Positions 18,441 through 58,981 of a DNA stretch of 64,000 bases are shown piece after piece (within the stretch, counting starts at the first letter, position 1; each line of letters opens with the position of its first letter). A program made the translations under genes and the position numbers. The stretch lies in NCBI RefSeq assembly GCF_006345805.1, contig NC_042999.1, positions 12,896,001 through 12,960,000 of the forward strand, read 5' to 3'. Under the pieces are notes generated by a model, which worked only from the letters and a program-made list of their open reading frames with translations, was not told the origin of the DNA and did no database searches. This DNA comes from Octopus sinensis. Lineage: Eukaryota.

Positions 18441-19843
18441 CTGAAAATATAGGAAAACATCATAATTATTCAATTATCAATCTATCGATTGATTAAATGA
18501 AATACAACTAAAATGAACAAGATATTATTTGCCTTCACAAACAGACAGTTTTTAAAGTTTGTTAAGTTAAAGTAATAGAATTCTTTTAGCATTCTATTCA
18601 GTATGAACTGCGAATGATTAGCTTCTGTGACCATATTTCTACTGAAATACTCTGTTTCAATTTATTGTGAAAATAAAGAATTTAGTAAAATAATTCTCAT
18701 CTTAAAATGTTGATTTGAACACACATTAACATGGAATTTTGATGGAAGGTTCCAATCGAGATCACTTTGAAGCGGGACATCTGTATCATAAAACCAAAGA
18801 CAGTCTCAGGTTGGTATCAAACAGTTAAATCCTTATGTCACCATATTCTATTCAAATATGCAACCTTTGTTTTCATTAATTTTGAAAATAATGGAGAATT
18901 TAGTAAAATAGCTCAGTCTTTTAAAACTGGTCCCTGGAACATCATCTAACATGAAATATTGATGAGAAGTTTCATTCAGATCACTTTAGAACAGGAAGTT
19001 TGTATCATACAACTTCAGAATGCTTAAACCACACTTCAAGAATGTTAAGATCTAAAACTTTATAGCTTGGAATCAATCCCATATGTCTGCCTATAACCTA
19101 CAGTCCTACATTACAGAGAAAAATAAAGAGAAGGGGGAAACTCAAGTTTTATGCTAAATAACAACAACAACTCCAGTACAGTTGTTGTTTAGTACCAAAA
19201 CAACCTTGAATAAACATATTTAAGACAAAAAGTATTCCATCCTTGATCATCCCTCGTTACTCAGGCATTGCTTACCCTAATCTAATGTATCCCTTTTTAT
19301 TAAAAAAAGACTTTATATAATGTAATTTGAGGGTGGTGTAACTGCAATTTCTAGCAAGTCATGCAACCACAGAGAAGCTCCTGAATGGCTTGAATTTAAG
19401 TACCATAGGGAAAATATGGCGTTTTGATACTTCAAGTTTGAGCATATTAAAGTATTATATTTATTTTTTATGTGTTGATAATAATTTCTACTTGTTTAAT
19501 GTATGTAGTATTACATCAGTGTACACACCCATTTGTGTACCACACATTATTACACCAACCAACTACTAAATTTTTTGAAACAGTTGTAAAGATTTTTGCA
19601 CCAAATATGTTTTTGTAACATCTTTCATAAATGATATAATGTCATGTCTAATTACCTGTCCATTTTTATCTCTGTTCATAAAATGAGTGAATGAAATGAA
19701 GAAACCTCTTGAGCTATTTATTCTAGTCAAAATGTTTGCTCAATAAAAAATATTATAGCACAAATCTTATGGAACATATTTAATGTATGGATGTTTAAAC
19801 AAGAGAGGAGAATTAGTATTTATTTGAAATGGCATTGTCTTAC

Positions 19844-20028
19844 CTCACTAGGAAGTTTCAATTCTGACCGATCCTCTTGCCCATGATGAAGGCCCATGAT
19901 GAAAGGGACTGGTGCATCAAGAAAATGAGACAGAGATGCCGGTAAGATTGGAACATAAACATGCTGCCATGTAAAGGGGAAAATAAGGGTGCACAGGGCT
20001 TCAGCCACCAACATGAGTCTCTGGTAAT
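19844..20028 (-). CDS. DENND5: DENND5 internal coding exon (DENN core), 185 nt, phase 1 to 0
   Basis: [47 protein letters not shown]...KLPSE contains the DENN signature [10 protein letters not shown]...LDAPVP. Acceptor gtatttcag|AT, donor GAG|gtaaga. Confidence 0.97.
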
Positions 20029-22144
20029 CTGAAATACAGAAATATCATCATCATAACAATTACTATAATATTATTAAGGTCTCTTATGATTTAGAACATT
20101 GGAAATAAAAGTTTTATGTTCATTTTCCCAGGCTCGCATGGGTAAGTTGAATATATTGAGGCATTGTTTTACAGCTGGATGCCCTTTTTGTTGCCAACTC
20201 TTAGTGGGTTTTGGAATAAGGTTGCTCTTATTTCACACATCATCAAAAGGCTGAAGTGAGATGATGATTTGCCAACAGATGTAACAATGAGCATGAAGAC
20301 TCTTGTCAAGCTCAAATGGAAACAAACAAATACATACATGCAAAATATTTCCAGTGATTGGAAAGAAATGAAATTAACCCCATTAGATACAGAGTTAATT
20401 TAAATGTGAATTTGAGCACAAATGAGTTGAGAACCCAACTGGACATCAAAATTGATTCTTTCAAGAGAAATGGCTGGAGAAGTAGTGATAAGTTGCCATA
20501 CACCCACGGCTCTTTTCCCCTGCAGCTTCCATCATTTGCAATGCAAATCAATGATGCAAGCTAAAGGGGGGAAAGTACCTTACATGAATGGCAGAAGATT
20601 GTTCAAGGGCTAAATTAAGAAAGCTAGAGTAAGTAATGGAAAATAAATGGATATCAGATTGTAAACCCTTTCAATGAAATCAAATAGGTTAGTGAGGTAT
20701 GTTTGCTATACATAAGGGTGCATAGGGCTTCAACCCCCAACATGAGTCTCTGGTAATCTGAAAATGTAGTGAGGTATAAAGAAATGTTCAGCTTGTCTAG
20801 TAGTATAGAGAAAGCTGCATTAAGCGGGTGTCTGTATTCATAACGATGACAGTTACAATGGTGATGACCGTGACGACAAAGACAAATTCAAATAAGACAC
20901 ATTGATTAATACTTTCTAAATAGAAATAGTCAAGTCAAAGTAATGGCAGTGATTTCCTTAGTTAGCAAAGAGTAGAAAAACACCCAAAACAATATCTATA
21001 ACCCTTTTTATTTGGTTCGATTTTGTATCTTTGTTCTTTGACATCATCATCCTTTAATACCCTCCTCATTCCATAATGGCATGGGTTAGTTGATTTGACA
21101 GGATCCAATGGCTTCTTTGGTATGCTTTCTACAGCTGAATGCTCTTTCCAACGCCAACCACTTTATAGTATATACTGGTTGTATTTTTTGTGTTACCAAC
21201 ACAAGTGAGGTCACCAGGCAACTGGCAAGACCATAAACCCCACGAGAGATAACTTTATGCTAGGAGATGAGGGGTTAAAACATGAGAGAAGGAGCCAGAG
21301 AAGTGCAATTTGACTCAAAAGTCCTCCATACTAACCATTTCTTTGGTCACTATTCCACTACCAATTATAACCAACTCTAATATAAAACATGTCATACCAA
21401 ATTCCCTGACTCATACCGTTAAGTTAAAATATGAATCTAAACCAGGCTGATAGCATTATTAGTTTAGAAAATAAACTATTTTATTTCCTCGTTATGTTTA
21501 TAGTTGTCTTCACTATAAACATACATTTGCAGATGTATGAAGTCAGACTGGCTCTCAAGATGTCGTTGCTGATCCATGCCTATGAAACTTTGAATAATGT
21601 AGAGCTAAGTCAGCCTGTTATTAAATAGTTACAACTCGAATAGGTGTTGAGTGCTACTTTCTTTTGTTTGTTCACATACCTGTGTGTGTGTGTGTGTGTG
21701 TGTAATAAACACAGCTATAAAAAAAAAACACACACACACACACACATACAGAGTAAACATTGCTGTACACATACACACACATACAATTTGAGAATATATA
21801 AACGTATACCTTTATTACAGTTCATAACTGAAATTCATATATAAGTATTACAATTAGTTATGATATTATATATACTCTGCACTAGCTGCTTACTTATCTG
21901 AAGATACGTTGCATAAAATCATTCTGAAATGTGGTATGTCACTGGCTACAAACCTACAATTTCAAAATGGTTACAAACATTTCATTAAAAAAACCCAAAG
22001 CATATCATTAATGTTACATTATAATTATGTTAAATGAAAACACTAGCTTTGCCCGATTGCAGAAGGAAAGTACCTGCTAGTGTGCTGATGAAATCTGTAG
22101 ACACATCATGATAAAAGTGCTCCAACAGATTACGGTTAACCATT

Positions 22145-31264: not shown

Positions 31265-33652
31265 CAGTGATCCCTCGTTTATCGCGATAGATTGGTTCCA
31301 AGACCGGCCGCGATAACTGAATTTCCACAAAGTAGGGACACCATATTTACAGTATTTATTTAACGCGTATTCGGACTTTTTAAACCCTCCTTGTACTGTT
31401 AACAACCCATCCATTACAGTAGTCTATTAATAACAAGGACAACTGTTAAGCAATAACACTTTAGATTTTAAAAAAATAAAGACTGTTACTGTACTCAACA
31501 CGAAAGAAGTTGAAGTAAAATTTGAATGATGATGAATTTGTTGTGCAGTAGAAATGATGATGATGAAGCTGACGGCGGTGTCCTTTCCTGGGACACGTCT
31601 TCCAAAGGTGCAACCATAGTAGTAGTAGTAGCAGGAACTGGCTCTTTTTTGCGAGGCTGCAAAAACATTGTGATAGGAAGTTGCTGCTGCTGCTTCTTTT
31701 TCCATTCAAAGATATCTTGTAGGGATTCATTACTTCGTCGACCTTGCTGCAAAATTGCACAAAACGAACCATATCGTTGTCCCATTCCTGCGACCCCTCT
31801 TTCAATTCTTTAGCCAGGTTGCAGAGCTTGGCCAGCCGTTCCAAAGTCAAGACAGTTTGGTCAACAACTTCTTCCATTTCTTGTTGCGTTTCTTCTTCTC
31901 TGGCCAACTTCGTCAAGTCTTCGAGGTCTGCGTCAGTTAGCAGCTGAGAGTGGCAGTCTAATAACGTGTCGATGTCTCCTGTGGTCATGTCTGCAAAGCC
32001 ACACCTCCAATTATCGCAGCCAATTGCAAAGCTTTCTGTACTGCAGAGTGTTGGATTTCGGAACGTGTAAATCCCTTGTCGTCGTAATTAATGTCGGGCC
32101 ACAAATTTTTCCAGCTCGCGTTAATGGTGGCAGGCTTCATTTCTTGCAATGCCTTATGGATATTTTGGAGGCACGTAGCAATTGTGTACTGCCACCAGTA
32201 TGCCTTCAAGATAAAATTTTCATCTTCATCTTCTTGGGTGGCATCCACAGAAGCAACCAGTTTCACCAGAAGATTCCTCGTGTATAGGGCCTTAAACGCC
32301 CTGATAACCCCCTGGTCCATTGGTTGAATAAGTGACATAGTGTTGGGCGGCAGGAACTCAATCTGAATGCCCTCATGGAACAGATCAGTAGCGTGGCCAC
32401 CAGCGTTATCCATAAGGAGAAGAATTTCGAATGGCAAGCCCTTCTCTAATAGATACACCTTAACTTGCAGGATAAAACACTGGTGGAACCAGTCGAAGGT
32501 CAGCATCTTCATTATCCGCGCCTTTGGATTGTGCATCCAATGTACGGGTAGTAGATTCTTGTTTTTGGTTTTTAAAGCCCTTGGGTTTTTAGACTTGTAA
32601 ATAAGTCCTGGCTTTAACAAAAATCCCACAGCATTGCTACACATCACGAGGGTCACACAATCCTTGTATACTTTAAAGCCAGAGGCTTTTGCTTCCTTGT
32701 TGAACAGGAAAGTTTGCGACAGCATTCTTTTCCAAAACAAGCCAGTCTCGTCCATATAAAAAAACTTGTTCGGGCTTATATCCATCTTCAGAGATAATCT
32801 TCTTGAAAGTTTCATTCGCGTATGTTTCAGCAGCACTTGTGTCAGCAGAAGCAGCCTCACCATGCAGGGAAACACTTTTTAGGCCGAAGCGTTTCTGAAA
32901 CTTAACAAACCACCCTTTGCTAGCAGAAGAAGGACGTTTTTTAGGTTGTAAATCACTGGACGTCCCCAGTTGTGGATCTTCTACGTCGTCTTACTCTTCT
33001 TCGTGGTTGTCACTGTCATCCTCAGGTTCCTTAGTGGCGAAAGTCTCGTACAGGCTCCTAGCCTTTGTTTGGATGATGTTCGTATCCAAGGCGATGGTCT
33101 TCTTTCGGCAGTCAGCTATCCATATGGCCGAAGCAGCTTCCATACAGATGATAGTTTTATTATGAGCCGTAACCACTCTCTTTGCCGATTTATTAAAGGT
33201 GATGGCAGCCGTCTTCCTAATGTTAGCCTCATCCTTCTTGATGTAGCAAACGGTGGATTCGTTCACACTAAAATGGTGGGCTATGGCAGCAAAAGTTCCC
33301 CTTTCCTTCAACATATCCAGAAGTTTCACCTTCTCAGCGATCATGATCATTCTTCGTTTGTGTTTAGGCTCAGTACCAGCCTTGGAAGAAGCAGCACGCT
33401 TGGGAGCCATTGCAGGGGATGAAAACACAAAGTTCAATGCAAATGAAAACACAAAGAAACAAAAAAACAAATCACACACAGCACAGCGTAAAGTAGTACA
33501 GAAAACCACGCGATAGAAATAATATCATAATATTTATTATTAATATTAATGGATTTAATGAAAAATCTTAGGTGTTCATATATATATATTTTTAAAATCT
33601 GCAAAGTCGTGAATCTGTGATAGTTAAACCACGAAGTAGCAAGGGAACACTG
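31265..33652 (-). mobile_element. Complete Tigger/pogo-family DNA transposon (~2.39 kb), TA target duplication
   Basis: TA|CAGTGATCCCTCG...CAAGGGAACACTG|TA termini, with an internal CENP-B-type transposase. Confidence 0.92.
31495..33410 (-). pseudogene. Tigger/pogo transposase pseudogene (HTH_psq/CENP-B DNA-binding region plus DDE_1, DD30D spacing)
   Basis: MAPKR...EKVKLLDML...NESTV..IKKDE; MDETGLFWKRM; LMDNAGGH; IQPMDQGVIRAFKALY. Split over several ORFs by frameshifts and stops. Confidence 0.9.
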
Positions 33653-40277: not shown

Positions 40278-40403
40278 CTGAAGAATAAAAGAGGACTTGA
40301 TGTTCAAGTAAGATACTGCGGAATATCCTCAAAATATTTCGAGAATCCAATAATTGAAAGATTTCCCAGAGAGAAAAGTCAAATAATGGTAATTCATTCA
40401 TGC
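40278..40403 (-). CDS. DENND5: DENND5 internal coding exon (DENN), 126 nt, phase 1 to 1
   Basis: (G)MNELPLFDFSLWEIFQLLDSRNILRIFRSILLEHQVLFYSS resembles DENND5 NELPLFDFPVKEVFELLG...LLEFQILLYS. Acceptor ttgtttcag|GC, donor TCAG|gtatgt; frame continuous with neighbouring exons. Confidence 0.95.
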
Positions 40404-41262: not shown

Positions 41263-41797
41263 CAGGTCTTTGACAAAAGATTGGTAATGAGGTGCCAAAA
41301 AATTTCATACTCCGGCCAGGTGGTGGTAATGGTACTTCATACAGAACATTATAGACATAACATTCCAGAGGTAGTTTCCTTTCCTTTTGGTTACTCACAG
41401 CATCATGTAGTTGTTTGAGAAATTGGCGGGTGGCTGAGACAAATGGAAGCTGTGATATTAATGCAATTCCTTTAGTGACATAAAGTTTGTCATTGTTTAT
41501 ATCATAGATGGTGTGTGGTCGAGGCCGAGACTTTCGCATTGTCATGGGACTTTGATCAAAAGCAGATTCCAGTTCAGGATAAAGTGTACGTGACTGGTCG
41601 TTACTCAACTCGGCATGATGCATTGCCTGCAATGTTTGCATTGCAGCACATATCTGTTCATTCTCAACCTCTTCGTAAAACACATACACAGCTCCATATG
41701 TTCGTGAACCATCCTCTTTAGTGATCATAAAAGAATGAAAGTGAGGAGATTTCAGTTGACTTTGAGTCCGGAATGATAAACCCTTGGGAAGGCAAAG
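41263..41797 (-). CDS. DENND5: DENN domain-containing protein 5 (Rab6IP1 orthologue), internal coding exon (uDENN into DENN), 535 nt, phase 0 to 1
   Basis: Translation LCLPKGLSFRTQSQLKSPHFHSFMITKEDGSRTYG...YNVLYEVPLPPPGRSMKF...CQRP matches the remembered DENND5A/B sequence (LCMPKGL...FIITREDGSRT...LYEVPLPPPGRSLKF...CQRP). Acceptor tttctttcag|CTT and donor CCTG|gtaagt. Confidence 0.96.
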
Positions 41798-43967
41798 CTG
41801 AAAGAAATGAAATATCTTATAAGCAGAGCTAAAAAAAAACACAAATTCACAAAAATGCCATCAAATCATCATCATTAAACACCCATTGTCCATGCATGGT
41901 GTGACCAAAGCTGGCAAACTGGAAAGCTGCACCAGACTCCAGTTTGATTTAACATGGTTTCTATGGCTGGATGCCCTTCTTAACACCAACCACTTTATAG
42001 CATGTACTGGGTGTTTTATGTGACATTGCACAGATGCTTTTAAGTTATGTTGCATGGATGCTTTTACATGGAGTCACATGGGTGCTTTTACCTGGCACTG
42101 TATGGGTGCTGTTACATGGCACCACCACAAGCGCTTTTTATGTTGCACTGGCACAGGACTCTTGCAGGTACCAAAGTAAATTATAATTACAAGAACAAAA
42201 ACCAATTATATCATTTTAAGAAAATGTTTATAACATGTATAGAGAGAAGAAGAGAGAGATAAGTGAAAGAATGGAAGAATGGTTAAGAAACTTGCTTCCC
42301 AACCACTCAGTTCCAGGTTCAGTCCCAATGTGTTGTACCTTGGGCAAGTGTCTTCAACTAAAGCCCCAGTCCTTGTGAGTGGATTTAGTCAACAGAACCT
42401 GAAAGAAACTTTGTGTGTGTGAGTGTGAGAGCGAGAGAGAGAGAGTTGGTGTCTCCTTGTGTCACTGTCATACAACATGTATCTTTTGTTTCCAACCTTC
42501 CATGAAGCTATGTCCAGCCATGTGGAAATATAACCTTACTTGGATACAGGTGAGGGTTAGTGACAGAAACGGTATCTAGCCACAGAAAGTCTGCCTCAAA
42601 CTTCATCTAAAGAGTGGATATTAAAATAATGATGTTGAAGGCTTGTTTCAAATCAATTTCCTTTTGAAGAAAGAGCAATAAACATCAAGATTACTTTATT
42701 CTTAAATCTCATTTATTAATTAACGTCCTCGTTATCAGATTTCTATTGAAATACTCTACCTCTGTCTCACTGTTTAAAATAATGAAGAATTTACTAAAAT
42801 AACATTGTCAGTATTAAGCCGGAACATGAGAAATTTTGATTGAACATTTGTATTTAGGTCACTTTAAAAACAAGAAATTTGTATCTTAGAACCAGGGGAG
42901 ATCTTGAGTAGGGAGATATTTAAAACATAAATTTATCAATTATTTATGCTTAGGAAACATTAAACAGGAGAAAGAAAAAAATTTTTTATATTTTCTTCAA
43001 TTTTAGGTGGAATAACTAAAAAGTTTAGTTGCAGACCAGAAAAAAATAAGGTTGATACAAATATATTTTGTGTGTGTGTATATATATAACCATGTATAAT
43101 TTTCTTACCTTTTTTCAAAGCTAGAAGCAAAAACTAAAATCTTTTATATCATTCATATTATTATTTTTGCAAATCACAAATAAGCTTTTCTTTGTATTTT
43201 ATGCATCATCATCTAATATGTTGGCAAACTCCATATTAATGTTCATACAAAAAATGTAGATATTTACTATTAAAATTTGAAATATGCTAAGATTCAACTG
43301 GGAATTTCACAAGCTGGCAAATGAAAACTGCATTGAAATATTTTAGATTTTTATCATCACTTAATGCAAAAAAAGAGTGCAGAATTTGAAATAGAAAATT
43401 TTTATTAAGAGATGAAGCTAATTAATATTAAGAATGTGGCTATGGCAGTGAGCAGGCAGAATCATTAGCATGCAATAGAAAATACTTAGTGACATTCAGG
43501 GTCGATAAAATAAGTAACAGTTGACCATTGGGGTCGGTGTAATTGACTTCCTCCCTTGAAATTAATGTATCTGATGGAAAATACCTCAGGGAAGAGTGTT
43601 TGGCATACTAAATATACATGTAGTTAGGTCTCACTTACATACTTTAGGGAGTTGAGCAACTCAGCTGAGATGAGCCAAGAGACTATCTCAGCACAAGTAC
43701 AAAAATCCCTCTAGAGAGTGTTTAAAGACTTAAAAAAAAAAAAAAAGCAAGCAGATACTCTAATACGATCAGTCACTAGAAATTTCTGGGCAATAATCCA
43801 AAGTACACATTTACATACATATACTTACAGGATTTACCCTTAATTCTTTATTTGAAAAGGAAATATTCCTTCTATCACATCACCAAATAGTCTGCTATCT
43901 TCCAAGTCACTAAGAAACAAGGTCATTGCAAATAAAATAGACACAAGAGTGCCATGTACACATCAGT

Positions 43968-50354: not shown

Positions 50355-50736
50355 TCCTCCCCCCACTACCCCTTCTCCTCATATGCTTTCACTGTGAAAA
50401 GACAAGCTGCTAGCGCCATAGCTCATCAACTGCCCACCGATCTTACGTTTCCTCCTGACACTGCCTCAATCCGACCATCCCCTTTTAGTACCCTCCCGCC
50501 TCGTAATATCCTACGTTTTTATTTCTTACGAACCTACACCAACCCTTCCTGCCATCGTTCCTCCTTACCCCAACCTTCCCCACTGGTTGCTCCCCTATAT
50601 TACCCCGCCTCAACTGACCCACCCCCCCCCCTCCCCAACTCAACTCTAGAATATCTGTATTTCTTTCCTCTACCTAATTACGTTACTCAGTGACGATAAC
50701 GAATGTCCACTGCTAACACCAGCTCCTGCCCACGGC

Positions 50737-51519
50737 GTGGTCAGGTTGGAAGAGAGATCAAAAGAAAATACCACGAAAACTATCACCACCACAACAACCC
50801 TCCTCTCTCAGGCGCCGAATCCCCCCCGTCCCCCCCACATCTCCTTCCCAGTTTTCAGAGTTGGCACTATCAATGTTGGTACATTGACAGGCAAGTCTAG
50901 TGAGATTGTAGAGATGCTAGAGAGAAGACAGGTTGATGTATGCTGCATACAAGAGGTAAGATGGAGAGATGCTTCGGCTAGGGTCCTCACGGGCAAGGCA
51001 CTTAGGTACAAACTCTACTGGCAAGGTAACGTGGAAAGTGTAGGGGGTGTAGGCATTCTCCTTGCGGAGGAATGGGTGGATAAGGTCATAGAGGTTGTCA
51101 GGGTTTGTGATAGAGTGCTTAAGCTCAGGTTGGTCCTACAGAGTGGCACAGCTATGATTATCTCAGCCTATGCCCCACAAGCGGGACTACCAAATGATCA
51201 GAAGGACAACTTTTATGATACCCTTCTGCAGGCTACTTCAAAGACTAGTAACAAGGACCTCATCTTTGTAGGTGGAGATTTTAATGGGCATGTTGGGCGG
51301 GAATCGGGTATCTTCACTGGGGTACATGGTGGCTATGGTATTGGCACCAGAAATGATGAGGGAACTAGACTGCTGGAATTCTGTGATGCATGCAACCTTT
51401 CAATCTGCAACACTAACTTCAAGAAGCCAGTCTGCCACCTTATAACTTATCAGTCAGGAGACTCCGCTAGCCAAATAGACTTCATCCTCACCAGACAACG
51501 GGATGCAGGGTGCTCTTGA
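50737..51519 (+). CDS. RTE apurinic-like endonuclease domain (ends at a frameshift)
   Basis: Conserved APE motifs; homologous reading continues in another frame (LLNTKTLPGEEC). Confidence 0.85.
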   Translation: MVRLEERSKENTTKTITTTTTLLSQAPNPPRPPHISFPVFRVGTINVGTLTGKSSEIVEMLERRQVDVCCIQEVRWRDASARVLTGKALRYKLYWQGNVESVGGVGILLAEEWVDKVIEVVRVCDRVLKLRLVLQSGTAMIISAYAPQAGLPNDQKDNFYDTLLQATSKTSNKDLIFVGGDFNGHVGRESGIFTGVHGGYGIGTRNDEGTRLLEFCDACNLSICNTNFKKPVCHLITYQSGDSASQIDFILTRQRDAGCS

Positions 51520-51760
51520 ATACAAAGACCCTCCCGGGTGAAGAATGTATCCCTCAGAATAGACTAATCATCAGTGACTTTAAGCTTGAGGCCAGAAGGA
51601 CTCCAAGAAACAACCAATCCAGAAAAGAAGGATTTGGAGGCTAAAGAACCCTTCGCATGGTCAGAAATTTAGGGACATACTCATCAAGAAATTTGATGAG
51701 AGGGAGGAGGAGCTTCAGACGTCAGACATAGAAGGTAGCTGGGAATTCCTACGGGACAGC

Positions 51761-54001
51761 TTGTTGAGTGCCACAGACCAAGTCTGTGGATGGTGCAAAG
51801 TCCCTTCCAGACCTAGAATTACGTGGTGGTGGAATAGTGCAGTAGATAAAGCCATCTGTGAAAAGAGACGGGCCTGGAAAGCCTGGAAGGATGGGGGCAG
51901 CAGGGAACTGTACCAGATAGCCAAAAGGGAGGCTGGGCGGCAGGTATACATTGCCAAAGATGTAGCAGAAAAGAAGAAGTTTGCCAATGTCCAGCGTCGC
52001 GAGGATCAAAGAGCTGAAGTATTTTGGATTGCCAGACAGTGTGTCAGAGAAAATAGCGATGTTATAGGAGAGAAATGTGTCCGCATGGATGATGGGGCAC
52101 TTGCTTTTACTACTAGTGAAAAGAAAGAGGCTTGGAGAAGCCATTATGAAAGACTGCTGAATGAGGAGAATGAATGGGAGGAGGAGAGCCTGCCAAATGT
52201 TGACCCAGTAGAGGGACCAGCTACCCGAATAGACAGCTCCCTTGTAGATAAGGCAATTAAGGATATGAAACCAGGCAAAGTCCCTGGCCTATCAGGAATC
52301 ACTGCTGAGATGCTTAAAACAGCTGGCTATGTGGGCTATGCCATAGTCACCCGCATTGTAAACCAGGTAGTTCACAATGGAGTCATACCCAATGACTGGT
52401 GCAGCAGCACCATAGTCAACTGCTACAAGGGTAAGGGTGATGCTCTAGATAGAAATAACTACAGAGGTATCAAACTGTTGGACCAGGTGATGAAGGTCTC
52501 AGAGAAGGTCATAACCAATCTCATTAGGGAGAGAATTTGTTTAGATGAAATGCAGTTCGGTTTTGTACCAGGTAGAAGCACCACTGATGCTATATTCCTG
52601 GTCCGACAACTGCAGGAGAAGTACCTAGCTAAAGATAAACCCCTCTACATAGCTTTTGTAGACTTGGAGAAAGCCTTTGACAGGGTTCCCCGTTCCCTTA
52701 TCTGGTGGTCGATGCGGAAACTGGAGATTGAAGAATGGCTAATAAGGGCTGTACAGGCTCTATACAGAGAGGCTGTCAGCAAGGTTAGGATTGGCAACGA
52801 ATATAGTGAAGAATTCCGGGTAGAAGTAGGTGTGCACCAGGGCTCAGCCCTCAGTCCCCTTTTATTCATCATAGTCCTTCGGGCAATAACAGAGGAATTC
52901 AAAACGGGATGCCCCTGGGAGCTCCTCTATGCCGATGACCTAGCTCTCATAGCAGAATCACTACCGGAACTAGAAGAGAAATTTCGGGTGTGGAAGCAAG
53001 GGTTGGAATCAAAGGGCCTTAGAATAAATGTAGCAAAGACCAAAGTATTAGTAAGCAGCAAGAGGTACTCAGCACACATCCCCTCGGGTAGGTGGCCCTG
53101 CTCAACCTGTAGGAAAGGTACAGGTAGAAACTCCATAAGATGCACCCAATGTAAGTTATGGACACATAAGAGGTGCAGCAACATTAAAGGGAAATTAACA
53201 GATAAGATAGCTTTCATGTGCGGCAGATGCACAGGGACAATAGACACAACAGACACTCAGAAAACAGATTCCATCACACTCCAGGGAGAGAAACTAGAAG
53301 TAGTTGATAGTTTCCGCTACCTGGGAGACCAAGTTAGTAGCGGAGGTGGATGCACAGAGAGTATCACCACTAGAATACGAATAGCCTGGGCAAAGTTCAG
53401 AAAGCTCCTACCCCTACTGGCAACAAAAGGTCTCTCCCTCAGAGCAAAAGGTAGATTGTATGATGCATGTGTGCGAACTGCCATGCTTCACGGTAATGAA
53501 ACATGGGCTGTGACTGCAGAAGACATGCGTAGACTTGAAAGAAATGAAGCTAGCATGATCCGCTGGATGTGTAGTGTCAGTGTGCACGCAAAACAGAGTG
53601 TAAGTATCCTGAGAGAAATGCTGGATATAAGAAGCATCAGATGTGGTGTGCAAGAGCGACGCTTGCGATGGTATGGTCATGTGCTGCGGATGGATGAAGA
53701 GAGATGTGTGAAGAAGTGCCACTCCCAAACAGTTGAAGGTATCAGGGGGAGAGGTAGACCCAGGAAGACATGGGATGAGGTGGTCAAGCATGACCTCAGA
53801 GCATTGGGCCTCACTGAGGCAATGGCGAAGGACCGAGATCTCTGGAGATATGCTGTGACTACAAAGACCCGGGCTGCTTTCTGCAGCAATTCCACATACC
53901 CCCTACCCATTCTAAGTACCCCGGATCCCCAAAGTACCCTGGATCCCCAAAGTACCCCGATCCCCAAAGTACCCCGGACCTCGTTGCCCCTGTGCCGCTG
54001 A
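51761..54001 (+). CDS. RTE reverse transcriptase, 746-codon open frame
   Basis: Complete RT motifs with YADD; no stop over 2.2 kb. Confidence 0.93.
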   Translation: MLSATDQVCGWCKVPSRPRITWWWNSAVDKAICEKRRAWKAWKDGGSRELYQIAKREAGRQVYIAKDVAEKKKFANVQRREDQRAEVFWIARQCVRENSDVIGEKCVRMDDGALAFTTSEKKEAWRSHYERLLNEENEWEEESLPNVDPVEGPATRIDSSLVDKAIKDMKPGKVPGLSGITAEMLKTAGYVGYAIVTRIVNQVVHNGVIPNDWCSSTIVNCYKGKGDALDRNNYRGIKLLDQVMKVSEKVITNLIRERICLDEMQFGFVPGRSTTDAIFLVRQLQEKYLAKDKPLYIAFVDLEKAFDRVPRSLIWWSMRKLEIEEWLIRAVQALYREAVSKVRIGNEYSEEFRVEVGVHQGSALSPLLFIIVLRAITEEFKTGCPWELLYADDLALIAESLPELEEKFRVWKQGLESKGLRINVAKTKVLVSSKRYSAHIPSGRWPCSTCRKGTGRNSIRCTQCKLWTHKRCSNIKGKLTDKIAFMCGRCTGTIDTTDTQKTDSITLQGEKLEVVDSFRYLGDQVSSGGGCTESITTRIRIAWAKFRKLLPLLATKGLSLRAKGRLYDACVRTAMLHGNETWAVTAEDMRRLERNEASMIRWMCSVSVHAKQSVSILREMLDIRSIRCGVQERRLRWYGHVLRMDEERCVKKCHSQTVEGIRGRGRPRKTWDEVVKHDLRALGLTEAMAKDRDLWRYAVTTKTRAAFCSNSTYPLPILSTPDPQSTLDPQSTPIPKVPRTSLPLCR

Positions 54002-54257
54002 CACGTTAAAATGCTCGAACCGATCGAGACGATGCCGGACCCTCCGGCCCCTGTGCAGGTGGCACGTAAAAATCACCCAATCCACTCACGGAGTGGTTGG
54101 CGTTAGGAAGGGCATCCAGCCGTAGAAACTCTGCCAGATTCAGACTGGAGCCTGGTGCGGCCCCTGGCTTCCCAGACCCGGTCAAACCGTCCAACCCGTG
54201 CTAGCGCGGAAAGCGGACGTTAAACGATGATGATGATGATGATATATATATATATAT

Positions 54258-57200
54258 GCAGGCATTCGTCATGACAAGACACTTTTCATAGCTCCGGTCA
54301 GTAGCCAAAGAAGCATATTTCAACTCAAGCCAGCAGAAACTATCCTTGTTTTTAGTCCCAGAACTTTTGAATTCTACAATTCTACTATTCTACTCTTTTA
54401 CTACCATCGGAGGATAAATTTATACAAATCTATATACAACCTGGAGAAAGAAATATAAACCAAAACTAAACCCAACACTAGTTCTAAAACTAGTCCCGTG
54501 AGTACAATTCTTTTTTCTTGATCTGTATTAAACACACCGCTCATCCTGATTTGTACTAAATACACTGAACTCTCCCGCACACAAGCCACGCATTTCCGAA
54601 TATATCGACACAAACTTTTCAACGGTGTATTCACTATTATACATCAAGCCATCAATATACACGTACAGTGTATAATACTGTCCCACTGAATATGGCCAAT
54701 AATATTCAAAAACGCCACTGGGTTGAAAATGAAATCACTGCACTGATAAATGCTTGGTACACCCACCACAACGAAGCTAATGTTTACAGTAAAATAGCTG
54801 AAAAATCAGCAAAACAATCCTTTCACAGATCGAAAATAAAATAAAAGAGATTATAAGAATATTTCCTATTTTCCACACGCACATGGCAACACTAGAAGCC
54901 ATCCTTGTCAATGAATGTAGTGCACCAAATGACCCAACTCCAACAGGTCAGGGGTCACTTCAACGACCCCATAGCCAGCAACAAACATCTGACCTAATTC
55001 CACCCAACACTACTCTGGCAAGCCAGAACTCACTATCACAAAAACAACAACAGCCTGCTTCTGCTACTACATTGGAACCAGTACCTGACCCGATTCCACA
55101 CAACCCTACTGTTGCAAGTCACGTTTCACTGCTGCTACAACAACAACAACACTGCTACTGCTACTACAATAGGACCACTGACCAACGAACGAGCCTGCCA
55201 ATATAGAAAAACCACTACTACACCCACATAAAACACCCTGCCATTACTATTCTTAAGGCAACTGTAGATTTGGCCCCAGCAGCACCAACAACAATGGACG
55301 CTGTGCTTTTTTCCATCCTACCTTATGTCGTAGACTTGTTAAGGGCACCTGTCCATATGGTATAACGAGAAAAAACTGCCCTCACCTCCACCCCAAATAC
55401 TGTCCTAAATACAGAGTCTATGGTCCTGATCCCAAATATGGATGCACAAAAGGCAATGGATGCACCTTCTTCCATCCTAAACTGTGCCAAACTTCTGAGT
55501 CACTAAGGATGTGCCTGAACCCAGAATGCAACCACCACCATCTGAAGGGCACAAAACGATTGCAAAATAAATATAAACAGCAACAGAAGAGATCTACGAC
55601 AACAACAAAAACAAAACACAACCACGTTTCCCCTCCTACAATCAAACAACATAGACAGAACCATGAAAAAACCATAACACCAAATAACACCAACATGAAA
55701 TATGTATCCTCTGACCAAGTGGCAAACCAAAGAGGTAACTCTTTTTTACTGACTTACCTAGAAAATATGAAGGCCGACCTAAGCCAGGAGATCCAACGAG
55801 CTATCAGCAACCACCTATGCAAATCACACCCACTACTAACAAGAAAATCATACACACACAGCTCCATACAAGAACTACCCACATTGTTACCACTGAACAA
55901 CATAAAACAAAACTTAGAGCAAGGCAAACATCAAACTCCCCTTACCTCGACATTCCTGTTAAATGTACGTGGCATCAACCCATCAATTATTGCCCAAAAA
56001 TGGAAGATCCCATAGATAGAGAGTTGGCTTGCCGAAACGGCACATTGCTTCCCTTTCTTTATCCTTACTGAGACTCACCTGAACAACACCCATATGGACG
56101 CCGAGGTGAAAATAAAAGATTTCACCATTGTTCGTGTGGATCGCACAGACCGAAATAAGGGAGGGACAGCCATCTTTATCCATCTATGACTCCTTTTCAC
56201 TTGATGCCAAGAATATATTTTCCAATGGCTATTGTGAATCTGTATCACTATTCAGCAAGGCCAAGGACATAATCATTGTTGGTCTTTACAGGCCTCCCCA
56301 AGCACCTCTAAAGTGCTTTGAAGAGTGCCTTAGCAAAGTCAAGTCTTTCCTTCAGAAGTACCACTCCGGAAACATACTAGTGATGGGTGATTTTAACCTC
56401 CCTCATGTGAACTGGCCCACAAATACTCTGAAGTTAGGCAAATGCTCTACATCAGATAGAGCAGCAGCAGAACTGCTCTTTAATCTAATGGATGAATATT
56501 TCCTGACACAGCTAGTGCTCGAACCAACGAGACAGAATAAAACGATCTTGGATCTGGTATTGACCAATCACTCTTGCTTCGTTCACAGTATTTCAGTTGA
56601 AAAACTCTCCTCTCAGACCACGACATGGTACTCTGCAATTTTAATTCCCGACATATAAAAACCAAACCAGCCAATCCCACTCCATGGCACTCATTTGACA
56701 ACATAAACTTCCACAAAGCAGACTGGGGAGCAATCAGAAAGGATCTGTCTTTCATCGACTGGTTCTTTACTCTCAATTCCACCCATATTGAGACTGTATG
56801 GCAGCACTTTGAAAACATTGTCACCAACACATGCTCTAAACACGCTCCCACGAAATCTACTAACACAAACAGAAACCGGCTCCCTAAAAAGAAAAAAAAC
56901 ACTCATCAGGCGCATCAAAAGACTCAACAAAAAAATCAACCAATTAAAATATTCCCTCACACAACATCCACATTGAACAACAATGAAAAGGCTAGAACTG
57001 GAAAAACTTCATCTGCAGACTGACATGAAAACCTTCATTGAAAATCAAAGAGCTGTGGAGGAACAGTGGGTAATCAAAAACATCAAACAGAACCCAAAAG
57101 TGTTATATTCTTATGCAAATAAGCATAGAACCACTGTCTCACCCATTGGGCCATTGATTGATGATAACGGCATTCCCCAACACGATGCTGAAGAAATGGC

Positions 57201-58981
57201 AGAAATACAGCAAAAACAATACTGCTCTGTCTTTAGTGTTCCCACTAATATTGACGTAAGAGAAGCGAACGAAGTTGACTCCCAACATAAAATCTCAGGC
57301 ATAACCTTCACTGCCACTGACATCATAGCAGCAATAAATGAGGTCAAATACTACTCTGCTGTAGGCCCTGATAGATTCCCCGCTAGTCTCCTGAAGGAAT
57401 GTAGACACCAACTTGTAGTCCCTCTGACCAACCTCTGGAGAAATTCGTTAGACGCAGGTTATATACCGAAACAGTTTCTATCCCAGTCAGTCATCCTGGT
57501 TTTCAAACAGGGAAACAGATCCCCCGCACTCAACTATCGCCCAATCTCACTCACCTTCCACATCATTAAAGTGTTTGAAAGAGTGTTAAGATCAAGGATA
57601 GCTGACTTCCTGGAGACCCACAAACTCCTAAATGCAAATCAGCATGGCTTTTGCTGTGGCAGGGACTGTCTAACACAGCTCTTACACCACATTGAAGATG
57701 TACTCAAAGCCTTAGGAACAGGTTCGAACTCTGATGTCATATATCTTGACTTCAGTAAAGCGTTCGACAGGGTAGACCATAATATCCTACTCTCAAAATT
57801 GGCAAATGTTGGAATCCGTGGAAAAGTTCTACACTGGATTAAGTATTTCCTGGCAAATAGAACACAACATGTTGTAGTTGATGGAGTCCTCTCAAGCCCA
57901 GCAAAAGTCACCAGCGGTGTCTCCCAGGGGACTGTCTTGGGTCTGCTACTCTACATAATTTACATAAATGACCTTTCCAGTGTCGTACATTACTGCAAAG
58001 TGAAAATATTTGCTGATGACACTAAGCTCCAGCAAATCGTCAATGAAGAAGCAGACCGAACTCAACTCCAGTCTGATCTGTATGCTGTGAGTCAATGGGC
58101 AGAGAGAAACAAAATGCAACTGAACGAGGGAAAATTTGAGCTGATGCATTTTGGAAGAAATTCCTCACTAAAACAGCCATACTCTCTTCCTTCAGGGGAA
58201 CTGCTCACAGCCTCTAACAATATCAGATACCTGGGTGTAATTGTTGATGACGATCTCAGTTGGAGTGCACACATGAAAAAGAAGGTCGATATAGCTCGTA
58301 AGATGAGTTCCTGGATCTTAAGAACTTTCCGGTCCAGAGAACAAGGTGTCATCATACCACTTTTCTCCTCTTTTGTATGGCCACACCTCGAATACTGCTG
58401 CCCACTGTGGTCTCCCCATACAAGACAAAACATCTCGAGGATTGAATCACCCCAGAGGGCACTCACTAAATGAATTGAAGGCATGGCTGCTCTCGATTAT
58501 TGGGATCGCCTTAAAGCCTTGAAACTCTACTCTCTCCAGCGTTGCCATGAGCGGTACATCATTTGTACCATGTGGAGAATATACCACCAACTTTGCCCAA
58601 ACGACCTGAACATTAGCTTCAAGGTTCATCAAAGACTGGGACCACGGGCCATACGTCCCCTGCCCAATTCAAGATCACAGCATACATGTACACTGCAACA
58701 TAATTTCTTTTCCTCAACAGGCCCTGCCCTATTTAACATTGTCCTGAAAGAGATCAAAGAGGAAAAGGATCCCATCAACTTTAAACGGAGTCTGGATAGA
58801 TTCCTTCAAAGAATACCAGATAAGCCACCCATAATTGGATACAACTCACCCAACAAAAACTTACTACTTGAATGGACCATAAACAAAACTTGACTTAAAC
58901 AGGATTTGAATAATCCTATCAGGTGGTGCTATTAAGTTAGACATGGCCTGGACCAATCTTTGGTCGAAACATATCTAAGTT
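54258..58981 (+). mobile_element. Full-length but decayed CR1/L2-group LINE (CCCH fingers, APE, RT, 3' UTR)
   Basis: LLNVRGI, LTETHL, R.DR..R.KGG, MGDFNLP, ILDLVLTN; RT NYRPISL, NQHGF, YLDFSKAFDRVDH, GVSQGTVLG, FADDTK, RYLGV; YWDRLKALKLYSLQR. Confidence 0.9.
56983..58473 (+). pseudogene. CR1/L2-group reverse transcriptase segment (496-codon open stretch, interrupted on both sides)
   Basis: RT motifs as listed above; flanked by stops and frameshifts. Confidence 0.85.

Follow-up and report, generated by a model that had tools for sequence, protein, structure and literature searches.

A partial copy of an intron–exon junction in an octopus DENND5 gene as a candidate cryptic 3' splice site

The window (the whole 64-kb stretch of Octopus sinensis DNA that was analysed) carries on its minus strand part of a DENND5 orthologue. 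Four exons of this gene lie in the window, and their joined translation gives a stretch of 549 amino acids in which Pfam recognised the uDENN (E=1e-9), DENN (E=1e-58) and dDENN (E=2e-13) domains. The domain order uDENN-DENN-dDENN and the best database matches, DENND5B and DENND5A, place the gene in the DENND5 class of DENN-domain Rab GEFs; the closest DENND5 in the protein database is that of the bivalve Solemya velum, with 55% identity. The exon that follows the ~20-kb intron is 78% identical to its counterpart in S. velum DENND5 (tblastn), and the bivalve protein aligns without a gap over the junction ...LLYSS|DYQKLML..., which verifies the exon boundary. Downstream of this exon, the next intron contains a diverged tandem duplication (78-90% identity) at 18650-19013, with a period of ~215-219 nt. 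The coordinates of the features discussed here are collected in Table 1.

A scan of metagenome contigs yielded 76 loci of host origin in which the same DENND5 exon is encoded. The majority have an intron that ends at the same position and in the same phase, just before the motif D/E-Y/F-x-x-L-M, which indicates that this intron position is ancient in animals. The boundary of the octopus exon is also backed by 46 distinct orthologous acceptors, which form the ag-anchored subset of the orthologous loci. A few of the metagenome loci have no intron here and read straight through.

Table 1. Positions of the DENND5 exons, the two repeat copies and the features between them, numbered from the first nucleotide of the window
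Feature	Position	Strand	Description
Copy A, downstream	19983..20034	-	Acceptor in use: tttcag 20034-20029 and the first 46 nt of the real exon
Copy B, upstream	20712..20763	-	tttcag 20763-20758 and copied exon start 20757-20712; potential cryptic 3' splice site
Real DENND5 exon	19844..20028	-	185 nt, phase 1 to 0, within the DENN domain, donor GAG|GTAAGA
Upstream DENND5 exon	40278..40403	-	Donor CAG|GTATGT, able to pair with either acceptor
Long DENND5 intron	40277-20029	-	~20 kb, ends at the acceptor in use
Downstream DENND5 exon	18440-17639	-	Follows the real exon
Another DENND5 exon	starts 41797	-	Own acceptor in the window
Spacer	20035..20711	-	677 nt, non-coding, single occurrence in the window
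SINE-like remnant	20100..20270	-	Old, degenerate; gene-sense orientation; aligned to five related copies
(GAT)3 run	20044..20052	-	Motif typical of the tails of the resident LINE/SINE family; 9 nt between its end and copy A
Hairpin	20494..20593	-	100 nt, imperfect, on the transcript strand, in the 5' part of the spacer
Candidate donor CAT|GTAAGG	20578..20586	-	G at 20583; best donor-like site 3' of copy B
In-frame TGA	20654..20656	-	Reached if copy B acts as acceptor

The long intron contains a second copy of the start of the real exon, 729 bases upstream of the first. The match between copy B and copy A given in the initial annotation was reproduced by a repeat finder and by blastn (E=6e-17) as a direct repeat of 52 nt with 49 identical positions. 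The three mismatches (copy A/copy B) are at 19994/20723 (C/T), 20004/20733 (G/A) and 20007/20736 (A/C). The orthologue alignment, which fixes the exon limits, bears out that the repeat spans the tttcag acceptor and the first 46 nt of the exon. By chance, ~1.7e-15 repeat pairs of this quality are expected in the window. Its ends are sharp, identity dropping to background at once on both sides of the 52 nt, and the layout is repeat, 677-nt spacer, repeat. Dispersed SINE/LINE copies aside, no other direct repeat with at least 88% identity within 5 kb was found across the 64 kb, which argues for a one-off event and not for a repeat family. We regard an assembly artefact as very improbable, as the three mismatches and the unique 677-nt spacer with its old SINE are unlike collapsed or duplicated haplotigs.

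Copy B carries intron bases, so it must have arisen at the DNA level or from unspliced RNA; an origin from mRNA is excluded, as the initial annotation had argued. A decayed tandem duplication of the whole exon, the relic of a former mutually exclusive exon pair, would agree with the fact that the upstream copy begins at the same acceptor. Tandem exons would be expected to share the whole exon and its flanks and to have a frame-preserving length, and none of this was found: no similarity remains past exon position 46, none was seen between the spacer and the stretch preceding copy B, and identity falls from 94% to background in a single step. Local alignment scores stayed within the shuffled range, both for the spacer compared with the stretch preceding copy B and for the two stretches that follow copies B and A compared with each other. 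A whole-exon duplication was therefore rejected and is scarcely credible.

Since the sequence from -6 to +46 is shared, copy B is predicted to present the core signal of the real acceptor together with the same exonic enhancer content in the first 46 nt. If the donor at 40278 were joined to copy B, translation would run into a TGA after 34 codons. Our translation gave exactly the read-through peptide reported before, DYQRLMLGVEALCTLMYSKHTSLTYLISLKGFTI*, with its stop codon, and translation and Pfam together support the earlier view that use of copy B would truncate the protein inside the DENN domain. Copy B could be used in two ways, as a 914-nt extension of the real exon or as a 174-nt pseudo-exon (20757-20584) closed at 20583, which contains the TGA; a cassette of 46 nt would shift the frame, and one of 174 nt would introduce a stop. 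The TGA lies upstream of later junctions, with at least two exons following it (20028-19844 and 18440-17639), and the resulting transcript would be expected to be removed by nonsense-mediated decay (NMD).

The donor that would close the pseudo-exon matches the 5' splice site consensus at 7 of 9 positions. With a rough 5' splice site matrix, it scored 4.0 against 5.6-6.5 for the real donors that were scored, and it was the sole candidate above threshold within 700 nt downstream of copy B when scored with the same rough matrix. It is covered by the 5' arm of the hairpin, whose predicted fold pairs seven of the nine donor positions. Neither AATAAA nor ATTAAA occurs between copy B and the real exon, so that an alternative terminal exon is unlikely. 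A search of the protein database with the chimeric peptide (upstream exon plus decoy) returned no candidate, in a database where DENND5 relatives are no closer than 55%.

The contexts of the two acceptors were compared in three ways. The lead-in of copy B had been described as pyrimidine-rich, and the count agrees: 17 of the 24 nt upstream are pyrimidines, which is in the top 11% of intron windows, whereas copy A has 13 of 24, a background level. Motifs resembling a branch point (yTnAy) are present inside the AG-exclusion zone for copy B and absent from that of copy A, in a motif scan that carries weak information. A cross-species matrix made from the 46 orthologous acceptors ranked copy A above copy B, but it did not separate the real acceptors of the window from background and was set aside as a discriminator. 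As the matrix disagrees with the pyrimidine count, any argument from context depends on the metric.

The initial annotation also offered a recursive-splicing-like reading. As a recursive splice site, copy B would help to remove the 20-kb intron stepwise. Like known recursive splice sites (PMC8605326, PMC6110457), copy B is a good acceptor in a long intron; it differs from them in having no juxtaposed donor and in lying near the intron end, 729 nt away, where a further step would bring little gain. Ratchet points need an acceptor and a donor side by side, AG|GTRAGT (PMC8605326). Copy B reads tttcag|ATTACC, by which no 5' splice site would be regenerated, and a regular-expression scan found no ratchet motif anywhere in 40277-20029. 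The recursive reading is thus refuted at the sequence level, and we give it practically no credence.

The differences between the two copies are informative about constraint. Residues 8-9 encoded by this exon are Val-Ala in nearly all animal orthologous exons, and also in the octopus exon in use, whereas copy B encodes Gly-Val, the result of two non-synonymous changes. Given that Val-Ala is nearly invariant in the orthologues, copy B has the derived state at two or more of the three differing positions; changes at such residues indicate that copy B does not evolve as coding sequence and is free of coding constraint. A second partial copy of the exon start was found in none of the 73 testable animal orthologous loci (median upstream sequence 1.8 kb), from which the duplication appears to be specific to this lineage. 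The copies have diverged by 5.8%, about as much as the two members of the youngest LINE/SINE pair of the window (95.4% identity) and far less than the SINE-like remnant of the spacer, with its ~62% identity to the family consensus. With only three substitutions in total, the survival of the AG and of the tract is uninformative about selection, either way. The derived changes in copy B and its absence from the 73 orthologous loci point to a young neutral scar and away from a conserved regulatory device.

These observations bear directly on the reading in which copy B and the donor at 20583 form a poison or decoy exon under selection, with DENND5 output tuned via NMD or intron retention. The 3' splice site is intact, the 5' splice site is plausible (7 of 9 consensus positions), 174 nt is a typical exon length, the in-frame stop lies well upstream of later junctions, and the hairpin over the donor could serve as a regulatory switch. 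Copy B shares with poison and decoy exons (PMC6097662, PMC7373989) the stop-containing cassette of normal exon size in a long intron, which could engage the flanking sites unproductively, and decoy exons are known to act in large introns (PMC6097662, PMC7373989). Regulated exons of this class, however, are conserved and documented with RNA data, whereas copy B is a young and unconstrained candidate that is not conserved across animals: it is absent at the 73 orthologous loci, two of its three substitutions are non-synonymous at invariant residues, and its splicing motifs are present merely through copying. We therefore hold a selected poison exon to be improbable.

The reading that we prefer, and consider probable, is that copy B is the young, unconstrained scar of one DNA rearrangement and at most a cryptic, transcript-killing 3' splice site. 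A single event at the DNA level would have copied 52 bp of the DENND5 intron–exon junction, namely 6 intron bases including the AG and 46 exon bases, and the two copies would now bracket the 677 bp of non-coding spacer with its transposon remnants. Most likely copy B is rarely used, as a largely silent cryptic site that occasionally gives rise to NMD-target transcripts. In genes with very long introns exon definition is established, and the real acceptor, 185 nt from a strong donor, would be favoured by it; the pseudo-exon has only one donor, a weaker one that is predicted to be part of a stable hairpin. Both considerations suggest a low use of copy B. Appreciable use may occur, in that the lead-in of copy B is at least as acceptor-like by pyrimidine count and is transcribed first. 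The duplication itself is probably neutral.

The spacer offers some information about how the scar arose. Its ORFs have no Pfam match and show no transposon protein, and no copies of it occur elsewhere in the window besides the SINE core. For two ORFs covering the exon and the spacer, look-ups of the exact product found neither on record, and scans with exact 24-mers gave no match in metagenome contigs or in prokaryote genome contigs. The SINE-like remnant is ~62% identical to a leave-one-out consensus, with an nhmmer core match at 20160-20199, and its body lies 55 nt further upstream than the (GAT)3 run; runs of the (GAT)3 type number 24 on both strands of the window, mostly as LINE/SINE tails. 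The 5' ~420 nt of the spacer have no match in the window and no Pfam signal. This part contains the hairpin, which has a minimum free energy of -46.6 kcal/mol (z=-3.2), a value that none of 200 shuffled sequences attained. The hairpin has the shape of a pre-miRNA, and its sole Rfam match is MIR477 with 21.7 bits, far below threshold. In an Rfam search of 19000-22000 nothing reached the curated threshold, and the sub-threshold matches were all miRNA-like; those to mir-297 and mir-466 fall on a (TG)n/(CA)n palindrome at 21676-21762 and reflect the simple repeat, not a gene.

One retroelement family fills the window, with more than 30 matches to an nhmmer model made from ten copies. All copies of the family end in ...GGACGTTAAAC(GAT)n, and some reach further upstream into ORFs in which endonuclease, reverse-transcriptase and PHD-like domains occur. 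RTE-clade LINEs have been described in octopus (PMC9115989). A nearly complete non-LTR retrotransposon lies at ~50650-54260 on the plus strand, with an endonuclease ORF (50650-51516), a reverse transcriptase with a PHD-like finger (51590-53998) and the 3' end ...GGACGTTAAAC(GAT)n; its best protein relatives are 50-57% identical, and the same ~280-nt 3' end occurs more than 30 times, in SINE-like or 5'-truncated form. A sense SINE at 41865-42038 (minus strand) ends with (GAT)3 68 nt upstream of the DENND5 acceptor at 41797. Together with the tail next to copy A, two of the four acceptors in the window thus have a retroelement tail just upstream.

The initial annotation took the downstream copy to be the original. 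The layout of repeat, spacer and repeat agrees equally well with an insertion into the exon that is flanked by a target-site duplication, and we consider, within the preferred reading, two models of origin that have roughly equal odds. In the first, a fragment of ~677 bp entered the exon at its position 46 and duplicated 52 bp of target site. The ancestral acceptor would then be copy B, with the original intron still in front of it, and the duplicated target, as it included the AG, would have allowed the downstream copy to regenerate a complete exon with a minimal acceptor. In the second, copy A is ancestral together with the spacer; the intron broke 677 bp upstream, and repair inserted a 52-nt patch templated from the junction. 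Polymerase-theta end joining or a replicative template switch could have provided the patch, and either would have left an intronic pseudo-acceptor. Each model is tenable, and each falls a little short of an even chance.

For the insertion, the repeat-insert-repeat layout is exact and the insert is unique; it ends in a sense (GAT)3 of the kind that closes the resident LINE/SINE copies, 9 nt short of copy A. The context of copy B is richer in pyrimidines and has branch-point-like motifs, whereas that of copy A is at background and has none in its AG-exclusion zone, although this argument suffers from the metric dependence described above, the cross-species matrix placing A over B. Non-LTR elements make target-site duplications of tens of base pairs, and copies of the RTE clade have been searched for duplications of 10-49 bp (PMC13295347); the typical L1 duplication is 7-20 bp (PMC3219598). 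Several observations stand against an insertion. The age of the SINE-like piece greatly exceeds that of the repeat with its 5.8% divergence; the insert must therefore have been already aged on arrival, unlike in a standard SINE insertion, and no match exists for its 5' 420 nt. No other LINE/SINE copy of the window has a target-site duplication of at least 12 nt: the other (GAT)n-tailed copies lack a convincing flanking repeat, and the few exact matches of 10-14 nt are simple-repeat or distant chance matches. The sense SINE tail upstream of the exon at 41797 indicates, moreover, that such tails close to acceptors are common in this gene.

In favour of the templated patch, an old SINE remnant beside the acceptor in use agrees with a long-resident intron end, long target-site duplications are absent from the resident LINE family, and an insertion into an intron would be tolerated without rescue. 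Microhomology of 1-4 bases is possible at each junction (a T-run at the 5' side; T, AT or TAT at the 3' side). On the other hand, templated patches in end-joining products are usually shorter and their templates nearer, and 52 nt from 677 nt away is both long and distant. The patch would also have to have landed behind a pyrimidine-rich stretch by chance, at the ~11% level, and the 5' limit of the template would have to lie 9 nt from the (GAT)3 tail by chance; no other such patch occurs in the 64 kb.

If the insertion took place, the acceptor now in use would itself be the copy: a 677-bp fragment would have entered a conserved exon of an essential trafficking gene and been rescued by a 52-bp duplication that included the 3' splice site, with the original acceptor left behind as a latent poison site. 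We put this forward tentatively, at somewhat less than an even chance.

Compared with known systems, copy B is a real and one-off structural feature whose kind is known, and it would function like a cryptic acceptor or pseudo-exon. Cryptic 3' splice sites and pseudo-exons, as covered in a review of pathogenic cases (PMC8819188), likewise consist of intronic acceptor and donor motifs outside the normal mRNA, whose inclusion leads to a premature stop; here, unlike in the known pseudo-exons, the acceptor and 46 nt literally repeat the start of the neighbouring exon and are neither a chance match nor transposon-derived. With non-LTR target-site duplications (PMC3219598, PMC13295347) the locus shares direct repeats that flank a segment (52 nt, 94% identical) and a family-type microsatellite tail near the 3' junction, but 52 bp exceeds the usual 7-20 bp and the insert is not a clean, young element. 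The geometry is that of a target-site duplication, without the usual length or a clean element. Templated insertions at repaired breaks are known as short tracts in direct orientation taken from nearby cis sequence. Copy B is such a cis copy, in direct orientation and from 677 nt away, although it is longer and its template more distant than is typical.

The consequences differ with the reading. If copy B is used, part of the DENND5 transcripts would be lost to a truncating isoform, which could be a lineage-specific cost or a control point. If the insertion model is true, the locus would be a clean natural example of an exon insertion neutralised by its own target-site duplication, and a transposon tail would have come to serve a constitutive exon as its polypyrimidine tract. 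Otherwise, the duplication would be a neutral scar, mainly useful as a dated marker for comparing related species.

Two further mobile elements were noted in the window. A second, distinct LINE-like element occupies 55257-58890 on the plus strand, with an endonuclease fragment at 56116-56655 and a reverse transcriptase at 56977-58470. The long DENND5 intron harbours the remnant of a pogo/Tigger-like DNA transposon at 31464-33524 (minus strand), whose ORF at 32878-31988 matches DDE_1 with an E-value of 1e-31.
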